From Selaginella moellendorffii (Eukaryota; Plantae; Lycopodiophyta): a DNA stretch of 64,000 bases. The stretch spans positions 1,617,955-1,681,954 of the forward strand of contig NW_003314275.1 in NCBI RefSeq assembly GCF_000143415.4. Reading direction: 5' to 3'. Below, piece after piece: positions 52,418-58,668 of the stretch; position 1 is the stretch's first letter, and every line of letters starts with the position of its first letter. The notes under the pieces are model-generated. The model worked only from the letters and a program-made list of their open reading frames with translations. It did not search any database and had not been told where the DNA came from. The translations under genes were made by a program, and so were the position numbers.

Positions 52418-54542
52418 ATGCCGGGCAATGGGCTCCGTGATGCCGCGGCGGGAGGAATTCTCGCTTGCCAGGGAGTGCAATGCAACTGCAGCCAGAGCGA
52501 TGGCCTCGAGATCCTCTTCCGCGAGATCCTCAGCCTCCACAGCTACTGGAGCAGCTTCTTCGGTGCCGAGCTCGACGCTCCGCGGGTAAGGGTTTTTCTC
52601 CCCCAGCTGGTTGGAGCCGTGGATTCGGCAGCGCGGCTGGTCCGGAGCTACTCCAGCGGGCTATGGCTGCTCTCGTCGCTGCGCAAGCTTGAGAATCGAG
52701 ATGGGTTCTTGCACGCCGCGGAGATTGTGTGGAGGTATGTGGAAATCGTGCAGCGGCAGCNNNNNNNNNNNNNNNNNNNNNNNNNNNNNNNNNNNNNNNN
52801 NNNNNNNNNNNNNNNNNNNNNNNNNNNNNNNNNNNNNNNNNNNNNNNNNNNNNNNNNNNNTGCTGGAAGAGGCGGCTGGCACCGATAGAATGGAACTTAA
52901 GTTCAAGGTGGAGGCCGAGAGAAGCTCGCGCATAAAGCTGTTTGTTCAAGGGGGGAGGAAGATCATGCTCGACGCTCTCTCGCAGAAGCTGGATTCCACC
53001 GAGAGAATCTATTTCATCGATCCAAGGTCGCTGCTCTTGAGTGGAATCGTGTTGGGTGACGCGAATTCTCTCGTGCAAAAAGGAAACTGGCTGGGACAAG
53101 CAGTGGCAGTGAAGAAGTGTGGCGATGGTTTTCGCTACTGCAGAGAGGCCGGGGTCTTCCAGCACTTCCAGCCGTCCCACCCGAACGTGATACAAGTCTT
53201 GGGAGAGTCCGAGGTTCCGGAAACAAAGGAGAAACTCCTCGTCATGGAGGAGAAGAACAGCGATCTAAAGAGATACTTTCACTCTTCCGGCCCGATCACG
53301 CAACTTCAAGCGGTGGACTTTCTGATCCAGATCGCTGGTGCGATGGTTTACCTGCACGGCAAAGGCGTTTGCTACCGAGACCTCAAGCTCGAGAACATCA
53401 TGATCGACGTCCAGTATCTGGAGCTCACTTTGGCGGACTTTGGCCACTCAAAGCCACGCTTTGATCCTCTGGGAGACAACACTTGTCCCGTTGGAACTGT
53501 CAGCTACATGGCCCCGGAAGTTCTCGCTGGGATAACCTCCGGACAGGATCCCGGCTATGGCTTCAGCGTGGACGTCTTCAGCTTTGGGATCGCTTGCTCC
53601 GAGATTGTGTCTGGACAGCCTCTGGAGCTGACGGTCCCTCTAACAAGGGAGGAACGAATCGAGCGATTGCGGCGCGGAGAGAGACCTTCGCTTCCAGAGT
53701 CTTGCCACCAGAAGCTCAAGAAGCTCATCACGCAGTGCTGGGATTTTTCGCCGAAGAACCGACCGACTTTCGAGGTGATCTACGAGAAACTCTGGGAGAT
53801 CAAAGAAGAGCTCTTGGCTGGAAGCCCCGCTAGCACGGACCCGGGAGAAGCTGCGCCGGCCTCTGAGATCCAAGCCGCTGGGATCCAAAACCTGGCAATC
53901 ACTGGAGCAAACACGGTGGGAAGCAAATCGACAGCAACTTGGCAGTACGTGAACGACACGAGCTTCTGCGTGGTTGGGTGGCAAAGATACAGAGATCTAG
54001 AGTCCGAGGAGCCCCAGCTATCCTGGAAAGTCTCGCTCACATCAGGGACTTCGAGCGATTACACCATCACTCCCGACGATCTCGACCGGCACGTTGGCGT
54101 GATTTGCTTGCCGCTGGCTCTGGTCGATGGGAAGATCGTGCCAAGGCAACAGGCTCGCTTCACTCACGGAGCTCTCGTCTCGCAAGATCCGGCGATGGCG
54201 AGGGAGATGGAGAGGCACTTGAGGAAGGAACACGTTGCTTTCGACATCACCGTCGACCGCCGGAAGATCAAGCTCAACCTCTGCCACACCGACTACCATC
54301 TCGTGTGGCATATGGGAAGCACCAAGAACTTCCGCGGCCAGTTTGTTCGTGGAGACGTGAGCGTCGAGGTGGTGGGCGATTGCTCCATGGTGATCTCCAA
54401 GGCCAGCCAGAGCCAGAGAAGCACGATCGACTTCAAGGATTCTTACAGGAGGAACTTAGCAGTGCTTCTGATTCGCCATTTTTTGGAATCCAGTCCTTCC
54501 CAAAATGGATTGGACCACATTCCAACCCGGAATACTTGGTAG
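52418..54542 (+). CDS. TKL/Raf-like protein kinase with N-terminal helical domain and C-terminal Ig-like/PH-like extension (spans an assembly gap)
   Basis: VAVK, REA, HPNVI, YRDLKLEN, LADFG, GTVSYMAPE, DVFSFG, CW..P..RPTF. The N-terminal ORF at 52418 joins across the gap. Confidence 0.88.
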
Positions 54543-54709
54543 GATAGAGACTATATCGATGTAAATGATCTTTATATTGGATGTAAAAATCAGGGAATGA
54601 CAATGACAATAGAAAGAACAAAATGACAATAGAAAGATTTTGACCAAAGCTCAGAGGAAAAGAATGAGATTAATCGCCAGTGTTGGCTGCGTCCATCCTT
54701 GGCATCTCT

Positions 54710-55906
54710 TCAGCAACCTTGGCAACGAAAAAATTCGTTAGATAAGCGAGCAGGGATTAAAGCAACTCTTACCAGCTTCTGGAGGGTTTTGCGAGCGTCC
54801 ATTCTAGCTTTGACCACCTCCGGATTCCAGGGGCAGTCAATCGCCAGCGAAAGAGTCGCGACCGCCCTGTCCATGAGGCAGCCGCTCCTATACCCGGTGG
54901 CTTTCATGGTCGCAAAGTTGACCATCCAATAGTCAGCGGCGACCCCCGTTGACGCGAGCGTCACCCTCGCCCTCTTTCGCCCCCGCGTCGCCGCCTGGAG
55001 TACCACCCGAGCATCTGGCTTGTCGAGCCGCGCCATCTCCATGCTGTTATCATTCGTGAAGAGCACCTTCACCTGGAAAAAAGAACCAAAATCAATGGCA
55101 ACGCAAAATACAAGTCAACCACGTTGACCAGCAGGAGAAAAAGAGGACCTCGTCTTGCTGGATGGTGGTCTCCTCGCCCTCCTTGAGAACAATCTTGATC
55201 TCACGGCGATATCCAGTCATCAGGTTGACCTGCTCCATCCTCTCCAGGTCAATCTTGTATGGCACGCCGTTTGGATACTTGGCAGAGGTGAAGGCAGCCT
55301 CCAGCTGATCATCGGCCTCACCGCCTTGTTTCTTGCCACCAGCGCGCTTGCTACTCTCGAGCTTGGACTTTGCGAGCTTGATTCTGAGAGCAATGTCCGG
55401 TTCATACTGGACCCATTTCTTATGATTGTCGAGCCACCACACCCCCGGCTTGGTTGGATACGCGCGGCTCTTATTACTCTCTAGCACCTTCACCTGGGAA
55501 AAGAAACAAAAAACCAAAAACCAAAAAGTCAGCGGCACAGCAAAAAAAAGTCAACTCAAACGAGGACCTCGTCTGGCTTGATGGTGGTCTGCTCGCCTTC
55601 CTTGAGAACAATCTTGATCTCGCGGCGGTACCCAGACCTCACGTTGACCTGGTGCATTCTCTCGAGGTCGATCTTGTATGGCATGCCGTTCGGATACTTG
55701 GTGGAGTTGTGGAACCCGATCTCCACATCCTTGGCCTCGCCACCTTGTTTCTTACCATCGGCGGGATTGCTACTGCTACTATCGAGCTTGGACTTCGCGA
55801 GCTTGATGCTGAGAGCGATGTCCGGTGGATACTGGACCCATTGATCATCCTCCCGCCACCACACCCCCGGCTCCGTGGGATCGGCGCACTCCTTGGTGAT
55901 ACACAT
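54710..55906 (-). CDS. Tandem WWE-domain protein (3 exons: 55906-55568, 55493-55149, 55072-54710)
   Basis: Two repeats of GVWW....WVQY.PDIAL.IK...YKIDLERM.QVN..(S/T)GYRREIK and a third degenerate YWMVNFATMKATGYRSG; phase-0 introns. Confidence 0.78.
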
Positions 55907-56028
55907 GTTGCCCTACACAAAGCTTCGCCAACTTTTTCTTTTAAACTTCTATGGCCCCCAAAAGCGGTCGATTCTTGCGGAGAAATCTTTAGCTCGCGCC
56001 ATTAAAAGCATCAACGCCCACATTGGGT

Positions 56029-56744
56029 TTAAGATAAGCTTTTTATCCATGGCATTGCCGTGGCGAAGAAGTCGCGGAGTTTGTCCGGGGATGGCAGCGA
56101 CGAGCGCACCAGCGGGTGCTCCCGGATCGCGTCGAGGAGGGCGAGGAATCGCGGGCAGGCGTCGCGCGATGGCAGCCTCAGGCCCCCGACCTCGACGAGC
56201 GATTTGGAGCAGAGCGCGGTGGAGACGAGGACAATGTCAACGAGCCCGAGCTTCGCGCCACCGAAATAGGGCGCGCGATTGCTCTTGCGCAGCTCCTCCT
56301 CGAGAATGCCGCAGCTGGCGAGGAAATCTTCCTGCCCGGTGGCCCGGAACACCACATTCGCCGATTCTGCAAAGATCTAGAGCAAACGAATTGCGAGAAG
56401 AGGGTAAAATCGATCAACCGTACCTTCCTCTCCACGAAATCTGCCCAGAATCGCTCCTGCGCTCGAGCGTATGGATCCCTGGGAAGAATCTCATCGCCGT
56501 GATCGCGCCACTGCTCGTCGATGTACTCTATTATGACGCTGGATTCCGCGATTGGCCTGCCGTTGTGGATCAGCACTGGGACTTTCTTGTGCACGGGATT
56601 GGATCGAAGCAGCAGCTCGCCCTTGCTCCTCACGTCCTGCTCGACGCGCTCGTAGGGGATCGACTTGAGTTCCAGCGCCAGCATCGCGCGCATGGAGTAG
56701 GGGCTGGACCACACACACAGCAGCTTCACGCTCTCATCCGCCAT
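56029..56744 (-). CDS. Tau-class glutathione S-transferase (2 exons)
   Basis: WSSPYSMR, LLLRSNPVHKKVPVLIHNGRPIAES..IIEYIDE, LPRDPYARA..RFWADF, YFGGAKLGLVDI. Confidence 0.96.
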
Positions 56745-56819
56745 AGCCAGGAACTCAAAACCCTAGAAAAGAATTTTAAATTTTTAAAACGTTTGTGCGC
56801 GAAAGTCAAGCCTCGCAAG

Positions 56820-57526
56820 TCACGCCTGCGTTGTCACTAAGTGAAGATTGGATTGAGATTCCGAGACGTCCGCTGGAGGAGCGCTGGGTTCGTGCCCTCG
56901 AGAAGCTCTCCTGGTGGATTCACGGTTCTCCAAAATCAAAACCATGAAAAGCTCTCGCAGGGCGAGCAAAGTCGATAGAGCAAATGCAGCGAAGCTTACG
57001 AATCCAATCGCCACTCCAGCAGTCACGGTGGATCCGGTCGAGAGTTTCTCACCGAGAAGTGCATACACGACATCGTCAACCAGTTTGACACCCACGGTAG
57101 CAGCGGAAGAACTGGCTATCAGTAAATATGCTAGAATCTGTGAGAACGAGGCTCTTATCAATCGAAGCCTTATCTGGCAAATCAAAGCTCACACCTGATC
57201 AAGAGTGAAGATGATACTGGCAGTGACAACGCTGGGCTTCTTTCCTCTTGCCAAGATCAACCATACCAGGCTTCCAATTGCATACACACAAGCTACGACA
57301 TTCATAGTCCCAGCAAACCTACAAAACAAATGGTGAGACTAAATTTGATCATGGTCTTATACCTGGTTCCTTCTCCAAGTGCAAGAGTGTCTTGTTCAGA
57401 GTAATATTTTAGCTTGTCACCAAATATGAGGCCGAAGGCAAGGGCCGTAACAATAACTTGGATTGATCTGAGAATAAAGGGACTCGCGCTTGAACAATCG
57501 AGAGGAGCATCTCCATTGCTTGACAT
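56820..57526 (-). CDS. CASP-like (DUF588/MARVEL) four-TM protein, 3 exons
   Basis: ILRSIQ TM1, NVVACVYAIGS, IFTLDQ|ILAYLLIASSSAA, GVAIGFVSFAAFALS. Confidence 0.85.
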
Positions 57527-58668
57527 CTCCTCGCAAGAAAACACGCAGGCCAGCCAGAGTTAAATACAAATCAGTCTCAATTATTAGATATACATTTAAG
57601 ATACCAAGAATCTTTTACGGCAGCATTCCTTTTGGAGGATCCAACGAGAAAGGTTTCTTTTCAATGGCCTTTATAGGCATGTCCCACCCGATCGTTCAGT
57701 TGCAAACTAAATGTCTTAAGGAACATTAACTTTATACAGGAAGTTAAAAAGTATCATAATGAGTATGGATATAGTTTTGGAATCACAAACTAAGGTTTAG
57801 TCAAGGAAAGGTATTTTTAAATATCTCTATTTTGCAAGTTATGAGAAAACTAGCCTAAATTAAATATTTCTATATTTTAATGGTTTTATAGTTTTGTTTT
57901 GTAACATTTACAACAAAAACATACTTAGTATCTACAACAAGAAAAAAAAAGAGGCACAAGTATGTTATATTCAATTTAATTCTTAACTGTTTTTTTTAAA
58001 AAAAAATTTGTATCTATTTTTCAGTATTGACTTTTGGGTGGTTTAAGTTATCTTGGAAAAAAAATATAAAGGAATATTCTATTGGGACTGTAGTGCCTTT
58101 CTATCTAGAAGCATCGCCAAGAAGAGCATGCCATCAAGAAAACAAGGAGCGAGGACCAAGAGCCTTCTAAGTCCTATAATGGTGAGGATTAAGGTGGGCA
58201 GCTCTAGTGCTCGTCCAAGGAGATCAAAGCCCAATGTTGAATGGCTCACACTAGATGTTCATGCACTCGCTCATTTCGAGCTGCTTGGTCTTCTTTGGAG
58301 GTGGTCTTCTTTGTGGATTTTGGTGCCGCTCTGGATTGTTTTGTCCCGCTCATCTGGGATGCAGTAGAACGATGCTCGTCACTAAAGTCAAGGAACTGCG
58401 CCAGTCGTCTCAGTTTACTAGTGCCCAGATGGAATCCCTAGTTAACTCTTTGGATACTCTTAAATTACACTCACTCAAGTAATAATACATGTTTTTGGAG
58501 GGTCTCCCTAACACTCATGAATGAAGCTCTCAAATCCTTGGCAGGAGCTGCATGTGATGAAAGCAAGAATAAAAGAGGAAAATCTCTTGAATCTCAAGTA
58601 ATTAGAACGAAGTATCTTGCTTGCTTTTGCAATACGTGTTTGTCCAACAAACAGCCTTCTCGAGAGCT

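Follow-up and report, generated by a model that had tools for sequence, protein, structure and literature searches.

In the plant literature, the WWE domain is confined to the RCD1/SRO proteins (PMC10115779); these are the only WWE proteins described in plants, and the WWE domain of RCD1 binds poly(ADP-ribose) (PAR) in vitro (PMC10115779, PMC2848248). As far as Arabidopsis is concerned, this statement is correct. The way in which WWE domains hold their ligand has also been described: a conserved Gln forms two hydrogen bonds with adenine, on which a Trp (Tyr in RNF146) is stacked, and the proximal phosphate is bound by a Tyr and an Arg (PMC11269756). The gene discussed here lies on the minus strand of a 64,000-nucleotide (nt) stretch of Selaginella moellendorffii (contig NW_003314275.1, positions 1,617,955 to 1,681,954), which was analysed as a whole and is called the window; all positions below refer to it. 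Its product, like RCD1/SRO, is a plant protein with WWE domains, but it has neither their PARP-like domain nor their RST domain. It contains two intact WWE units that arose by a tandem duplication, and it appears to be a truncated member of an enzyme-bearing family that extends from stoneworts to gymnosperms.

The product has 343 residues and is identical to RefSeq XP_024531145.1 (P0032), "uncharacterized protein LOC112346420" of Selaginella moellendorffii, which holds all four exon translations, exact and in order (residues 1-113, 114-228, 229-328 and 329-343). The four-exon model is already in the public annotation, where the product is named only uncharacterized. The protein was retrieved with exon 2 as the only query of an exhaustive HMMER search (1.84 billion cluster representatives, E 1e-3), and the full-length analyses used either P0032 or the second member of its 90% cluster, S. 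moellendorffii XP_024539172.1 (LOC112349277, P0001). The latter maps to another scaffold with the same neighbours in synteny (a glutathione transferase (GST) gene, the WWE gene and a kinase gene), and it is the second-haplotype copy of the WWE gene. RNA data over 53000..58500 came from two stranded raw RNA-seq runs and from the contigs of two further runs (three studies; the runs bear the labels X below). The parts of the gene are as follows.

55907..55967, minus strand: 5' untranslated region (UTR); the transcript starts approximately near 55967, the end of an X5 contig.
55906..55568, minus strand: exon 1, 113 codons, with the Met-Cys N-terminus and the intact WWE unit 1a (W17, W23, Y26, Y77, Q86, R95).
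55567..55494, minus strand: intron 1, 74 nt, GTCCTC...CCCAG; RNA joint 55491->55566, with the cut shifted by 2 (raw reads of X21; contigs of X1 and X5).
55493..55149, minus strand: exon 2, 115 codons, with the intact WWE unit 1b (W133, W140, Y143, Y192, Q201, R210).
55148..55073, minus strand: intron 2, 76 nt, GTCCTC...TCCAG; RNA joint 55070->55147 (X21, X22, X1, X5).
55072..54773, minus strand: exon 3, 100 codons, with a degenerate unit and a P-W-N-P linker motif.
54772..54718, minus strand: intron 3, 55 nt, GTAAGA...CCAAG; RNA joint 54715->54771, with the cut shifted by 2 (X21, X22, X1, X5).
54717..54670, minus strand: coding part of exon 4, 15 codons (VAEEMPRMDAANTGD) and TAA, corresponding to residues 329-343 of XP_024531145.1.
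54669..54597, minus strand: 3' UTR, ending approximately at 54560-54597, since contigs reach 54560 (X1) and 54597 (X5).

The WWE gene is transcribed and correctly spliced, all three introns being removed in the RNA reads and contigs. First mates map to the plus strand, as at the GST gene, which is on the minus strand, and in reverse of the pattern at the kinase gene on the plus strand; this agrees with an RNA of the minus strand. Depth varies: the WWE contig of run X5 stands at 100-126, versus ~7 for the kinase and ~3-4 for the GST gene, and in the raw-read runs the depth is low, 1-6. Neither joints to additional exons nor loose ends touching the gene were found in the four runs over 53000..58500. 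Expression, and possible splicing to a larger PARP-type gene, were two of the checks that an earlier model-made description of this locus (the first-pass annotation) had called for; the gene proves to be expressed, and no PARP, RST, RING or macro exons are joined to it at this depth. The same annotation had placed the gene at 54710-55906. Exons 1 and 2 and their splice sites hold, while the 3' end was wrong: the coding sequence ends at 54670, and 54710 is the stop met by reading through intron 3, so that this intron and exon 4 had been overlooked. One further observation concerns the window position 55452, a synonymous site in exon 2, where the X5 contig has the base of the other haplotype; for this reason transcripts of both haplotype copies probably exist.

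Are the two units truly WWE domains? The Pfam WWE profile (PF02825) gives 30.8 bits for exon 1 and 36.9 bits for exon 2, with a gathering score of 21.1, and 58.5 bits over two stretches of the full second-haplotype protein. An AlphaFold2 model, built on a 28-sequence family alignment, has a predicted local distance difference test (pLDDT) of ~90 for residues 10-100 and of 80-85 for residues 130-215 (up to 94 in the units). By VIA-align, the modelled unit 1b resembles TRIP12 (Z 9.9, root-mean-square deviation (rmsd) 2.9 Å, 73/73 residues) and HUWE1 (Z 9.0, rmsd 1.8 Å), and unit 1a has a Z of 8.1 to the RNF146 WWE bound to iso-ADP-ribose. Both units are thus predicted to adopt the WWE fold, a half beta-barrel covered by one helix; the WWE identity proposed at first sight is borne out by profile and model alike, and so is the motif that had suggested it, as exons 1 and 2 both read W-W...W-x-x-Y...Y-K-I-D-L-E-R-M-x-Q-V-N...G-Y-R-R-E-I. 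Between the helix and the third strand, each has a Ser/Lys/Gly-rich insertion of ~20 residues (pLDDT 65-75). No PARP, RST, RING or macro domain is detected by Pfam in any exon or in the full protein, as had been claimed, and tblastn disclosed no further WWE copy within the window.

Eight columns of the family alignment are invariant: P10, G14, W17, W23, Y26, Y77, Q86 and R95. The HMMER alignment to full-length HUWE1 pairs W17 with Trp1619 and Q86 with Gln1667; counted along the printed alignment, Y77 corresponds to Tyr1658 and R95 to Arg1676. The equivalents in unit 1b are W133, Y192, Q201 and R210. Read from these alignments, units 1a and 1b retain all four of the ADP-ribose-contacting residues known from solved WWE structures.

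Which of the described WWE proteins are closest? A profile of 25 family WWE units, searched against solved WWE structures, matches DTX1 (1.7e-10), Deltex (7e-9), TRIP12 (2e-7), HUWE1 (1e-6), PARP11 (9e-6) and RNF146 (0.04). The best matches are animal E3/PARP-type WWEs (DTX1, TRIP12, HUWE1 and PARP11), and the animal-type resemblance noted earlier is supported. The single WWEs of RNF146, TRIP12 and HUWE1 share this fold (Z 8.1-9.9) and a ligand set of Trp/Tyr, Tyr, Gln and Arg with the Selaginella units; the Selaginella protein differs from them by lacking a ligase domain, by its 20-residue insertion, and by an acidic loop in place of the basic loop of RNF146. Deltex and DTX1 (PDB 2a90 and 8r5n) have a tandem WWE in common with it and provide both the best PDB profile match (E 1.7e-10) and the best Foldseek match (E 6.9e-6). 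However, neither the RING-H2 nor the DTC domain of Deltex (DTX1/2/4) is present, and the tandem is a recent duplication of one unit, unlike that of Deltex. A sponge DTX2 retrieved by the search (P0014) is an example of a true Deltex member.

The likeness to Deltex brings in a different view of the two units, namely that they are protein-protein interaction modules tethering a protein partner, as the tandem WWE of Deltex does with the Notch ankyrin repeats. Originally, the WWE domain was put forward as a module for protein interactions (PMC2848248, PMC10115779); sequence and Foldseek searches both have their best match in the tandem WWE of DTX1 and Deltex, and the loop after the Trp is acidic. 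Yet ADP and ATP are bound by the WWE domains of DTX1 too (PMC11269756), the residues that contact the nucleotide are complete and unvaried throughout the family, and the two domains together superpose poorly on DTX1 (rmsd ~13 Å over 139 residues). We consider it unlikely that tethering is the purpose of these units.

The two units owe their likeness to each other to a duplication. At the protein level, exon 1 is 68% identical to exon 2 (BLASTP E 3e-50), and the repeat extends over the intron, with the two copies at the following positions.

55894..55473, minus strand: first copy of the tandem duplication, 422 nt.
55472..55052, minus strand: second copy of the tandem duplication, 421 nt.

The copies have 333 identical positions, versus a maximum of 264 in 200 shuffles. 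Introns 1 and 2 can be aligned through common GTCCTC, GTTGACTT and TTTTGGTT blocks, intron 2 being a copy of intron 1, and they terminate in TTTCCCAG and TTTTCCAG, respectively. The donor boundary GAC GAG|GTCCTC is that of exon 1 and of exon 2, and GTGAAGGTGCT opens both exon 2 and exon 3. The first 21 nt (7 codons) of exon 2 match exon 3 at 15/21 positions and exon 1 at 5/21; from codon 8 onward, 24/33 nt match exon 1 from its codon 5, and 12/33 match exon 3. The alignments resolve to one tandem duplication of ~422 nt, whose left breakpoint lies at codon 4/5 of exon 1 and which runs through the intron into the next exon, where codon 7 precedes the right breakpoint; the first seven codons of exon 2 were evidently copied from the start of exon 3. 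These breakpoints explain the shared donors and the shared acceptor without exon 3 being a third copy, and they are the reason why only the first 21 nt are common to exons 2 and 3. The proposal of a WWE-only protein built by exon duplication is therefore sustained by the 68% identity and by a 422-nt repeat that includes the intron. Set against each other, the duplicated exons have a synonymous divergence (dS) of 0.44 and a ratio of nonsynonymous to synonymous divergence (dN/dS) of 0.43; both intact WWE units are under purifying selection.

As for the origin of the protein, the exhaustive search with exon 2 returned 31 representatives at E 1e-3, of which only the gene's own protein fell below 1e-30; two further weak matches came from a word search with the whole protein. 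A G-(V/I)-(W/Y)-W motif occurs in 24 representatives, most of which open with M-C-x-x-x-x-C-A-D-P-T-x-P-G-V-W-W-R-D-D. The named sources of the family are Chara braunii, three Closterium strains, Mesotaenium endlicherianum, Riccia sorocarpa, Ceratodon purpureus, Diphasiastrum complanatum, Selaginella, Ginkgo biloba and Welwitschia mirabilis; there is no angiosperm among the matches carrying a source name. Several architectures are found: WWE-WWE-PARP in Mesotaenium and Chara, a WWE followed by a degenerate remainder in gymnosperms, WWE-(WWE)-RING, and short fragments with WWE only. The RST domain is present in none of the 30 matches scanned with Pfam, out of the 31 from the exhaustive search (the 92-residue P0010 was left out). 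This gives indirect support for placing the WWE units of the family nearer to the animal E3/PARP type than to the WWE of RCD1. Three members known from Logan contigs (P0015, P0018 and P0038) carry a C3HC4 RING after one or two WWE units, an RNF146-like layout of reader plus ligase.

The most informative relatives are the streptophyte WWE-WWE-PARP-like proteins with the MC..CADPTxPGVWW start, such as Chara braunii GBG73099.1, Mesotaenium ME000081S09775, Closterium CAI5954189.1 and Riccia KAL3693818.1, which are named in databases only "hypothetical" or "WWE domain-containing protein". The Selaginella protein shares with them the Met-Cys...CADP...GVWW N-terminus, the invariant ligand residues, and the order of a first WWE, a divergent second WWE and a PxNP linker. 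It differs in having the first WWE twice, the second WWE decayed, and no FHGT-type ADP-ribosyltransferase (ART) domain: it stops ~30 residues past the linker motif, where the streptophyte family continues into a small PARP-like domain (FHGT ... Y). By this comparison it can be read as a truncated derivative of an enzyme-bearing family and not as an original stand-alone adaptor. The first-pass annotation had described it as a stand-alone adaptor, which is right in that there are no effector domain and no further exons, and has to be amended in that the protein appears to derive by truncation from a WWE-WWE-ART family.

The C-terminal 115 residues required separate attention. For this region, or for exon 3, there was no Pfam WWE match, nothing in NCBIfam, nothing meaningful in the PDB sequence search and no usable ESM Atlas match; a word search found only the other haplotype, and BLASTP against the Mesotaenium and Chara proteins gave no match. 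Two candidate explanations were discarded. Exon 3 is not a third, recent copy of the exon that was duplicated (no alignment to exon 2 by BLASTP, and a probability of 0.3% by hhalign versus both exons). Neither is it a truncated PARP-like/ART domain, as a resemblance by eye of "VLFTND" to "LFHGT" might suggest: hhalign of residues 229-343 against a linker+ART profile (Mesotaenium, Chara, Closterium, Riccia and related) gave a probability of 0.7% and aligned only C-P-W-N-P, to F-P-G-D-P. The Top7-like structure matches of the C-terminal model (Z 4) are meaningless.

What remains is the second WWE of the family. Against a profile of this WWE and the linker, hhalign aligned 73 collinear columns (P 6e-4, HH probability 29%, a moderate support), anchored by D-x-S...D, (A/R)-V-L-Q-A-A-x-x-G, (I/V)-x-(L/F)-A-T-M and P-x-(N/D)-P. 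The score of 27.2 was reached by 0/250 composition-preserving shuffles (mean 11.3, standard deviation 2.2, maximum 21.1; z ~7), and the reversed C-terminal sequence scored 14.6. The match to the first-WWE profile is weaker (P 0.007), with 2/250 shuffles reaching the score. With reasonable, though not full, confidence, the C-terminal region can be regarded as a relic of the second WWE and the linker. The degenerate third unit that had been noticed in exon 3 is thus to be kept as a WWE relic, on the strength of the WWE2+linker match, and to be given up as a copy of the duplicated exon. A side observation is a basic cluster, R-G-R-K-R-A-R, at residues 258-264 (54979-54999) inside the relic, where the algal relatives have an Ala/Thr-rich loop. 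Nuclear localisation signals follow the pattern K-(K/R)-x-(K/R), and the cluster would fit a monopartite signal of this kind.

Could this third unit bind as well? The first-pass annotation spoke of a multivalent reader, which taken literally means that all three units bind PAR. The third unit is indeed WWE-derived and retains an aromatic residue at the Tyr position. On the other hand, in the aligned register the Trp has become Thr, the Gln Ala and the Arg Met, and the strand region has lost several residues; it has no Pfam match, and its pLDDT is <50. With the ligand residues lost, canonical binding is not expected there and at most two sites can bind, so a trivalent reader seems to us highly improbable.

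With two sites, a function can be proposed. The protein would bind an ADP-ribose-containing ligand (PAR/iso-ADP-ribose or ADP-ribose-like nucleotides) at both of them, and, having no catalytic or ligase output domain, it would act as a bivalent reader or adaptor; alternatively, it may be a competitor that shields ADP-ribosylated targets from its effector-bearing relatives (WWE-ART and WWE-RING). A precedent exists in that an isolated WWE domain, when overexpressed in cells, stabilises PAR chains (PMC10793466), so that a reader-only protein can act by itself. We lean, by a little more than an even chance, towards a bivalent, non-catalytic reader of ADP-ribose/PAR or a competitor of the effector-bearing relatives. 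Several points weigh against it. In the collections searched there is no ortholog above ~50% identity outside S. moellendorffii, and none with the same architecture. Among animal WWE domains, there are some that fail to bind PAR (PMC10115779). How the two WWE domains are oriented to each other is not confidently predicted (predicted template modelling score, pTM, 0.44), nor does AlphaFold2 fold the C-terminal region with confidence (pLDDT <50 in context, 46.5 alone), and this part shows 5 nonsynonymous and 3 synonymous differences between the haplotypes. Lastly, the stacking Trp is followed by an acidic loop (R-E-D-D), while RNF146 has there a basic loop that encloses the distal phosphate; specificity for iso-ADP-ribose is therefore doubtful.

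Some of these points would also suit another history, in which the gene is a decaying remnant that has been drifting since a recent loss of the ART domain, its transcript and frame persisting with no function of its own. Orthologs are absent from the searched collections, the C-terminal region combines its 5/3 differences with an unconfident fold and lost ligand residues, and expression is low in 2/4 runs. Decay of the whole gene, however, fits poorly with the rest: the reading frame is intact and the duplication present in both haplotypes; the WWE exons differ between haplotypes by 9 synonymous versus 3 nonsynonymous changes, none of the latter in exon 1; the duplicates, at dS 0.44, still have a dN/dS of 0.43 with all ligand residues kept; splicing is correct, and the depth in X5 is far above that of both neighbours. 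The haplotype counts, small as they are, suggest that the C-terminal region is under weaker constraint than the WWE exons. We would give a functionless remnant only a slim chance, and the bivalent reader or competitor is retained as the preferred reading.

A further feature is the N-terminus. The plant cysteine oxidase (PCO)/Arg N-degron pathway has a Met-Cys start as its entry signal; N-terminal S-acylation is an alternative reading of such a start. To our knowledge, no endogenous PCO substrate is established in algae and non-flowering plants. In the WWE gene, Met-Cys occupies codons 1-2 at 55901-55906, and the start codon is secure because it is the first ATG of the transcript (there is none in the 5' UTR) and an in-frame TAG stands 9 nt before the ATG at 55906. 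The same start is found in 21/24 subfamily representatives, from stoneworts to gymnosperms (including P0006, P0017, P0030, P0033, P0020 and P0028), and Cys2 is nearly invariant in the family. The exon 2 duplicate has lost both N-terminal cysteines (C-A-D-P -> R-A-Y-P), and the rest of the domain stayed constrained, which means that the cysteines are not needed for the fold. Active PCOs have been described in a liverwort and in a streptophyte alga (PMC9585510). It is conceivable, but a long shot, that the whole family, including the Selaginella protein, is controlled via Met-Cys by the PCO/Arg N-degron pathway, in which case ADP-ribose reading would take place only at low oxygen or low nitric oxide. 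If this is true, the family proteins are endogenous PCO substrates in algae and non-flowering plants.

Why does this protein matter? The picture of a single WWE lineage in plants may need to be widened, as non-flowering plants appear to keep a second one, similar to the animal E3/PARP-type WWEs and inherited from streptophyte algae, with members in stoneworts, desmids, a liverwort, a moss, lycophytes and gymnosperms. This lineage is undescribed in the plant literature searched. Within it, the Selaginella gene would be a natural "reader-only" derivative, with two intact predicted binding modules and no output domain, and it lends itself, as a compact case, to testing what is recognised by plant PAR readers and whether readers without an effector compete. 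In practical terms the importance is modest: one species is known to have this exact architecture, and the function is predicted from sequence.

The neighbours of the WWE gene deserve a brief mention. Upstream on the same strand is the tau-class GST gene (56029..56744, minus strand), interrupted by a single 47-nt intron (56377..56423). Its expression is strong in the raw-read runs, and alternative bases at 20-30% in many positions fit with reads of both haplotypes. An X1 contig, 55652-56308, is unbroken from the last GST exon into WWE exon 1, and the X5 contig of the WWE gene starts at 55967; the X1 contig may represent either GST read-through or a 3' UTR that overlaps the WWE promoter region. 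On the other side lies the convergent protein kinase gene (52611-54542, plus strand; Pkinase 127 bits), whose product continues past the kinase domain for ~250 residues without a Pfam match. The assembly has a run of N near 52770-52870, at this gene, and the kinase model on the other haplotype has 707 residues. Between the WWE stop at 54670 and the end of the kinase reading frame at 54542 there are ~130 nt; the kinase contig (plus strand) reaches 54624, and the 3' ends of the WWE and kinase transcripts overlap by ~30-65 nt (54560-54624).

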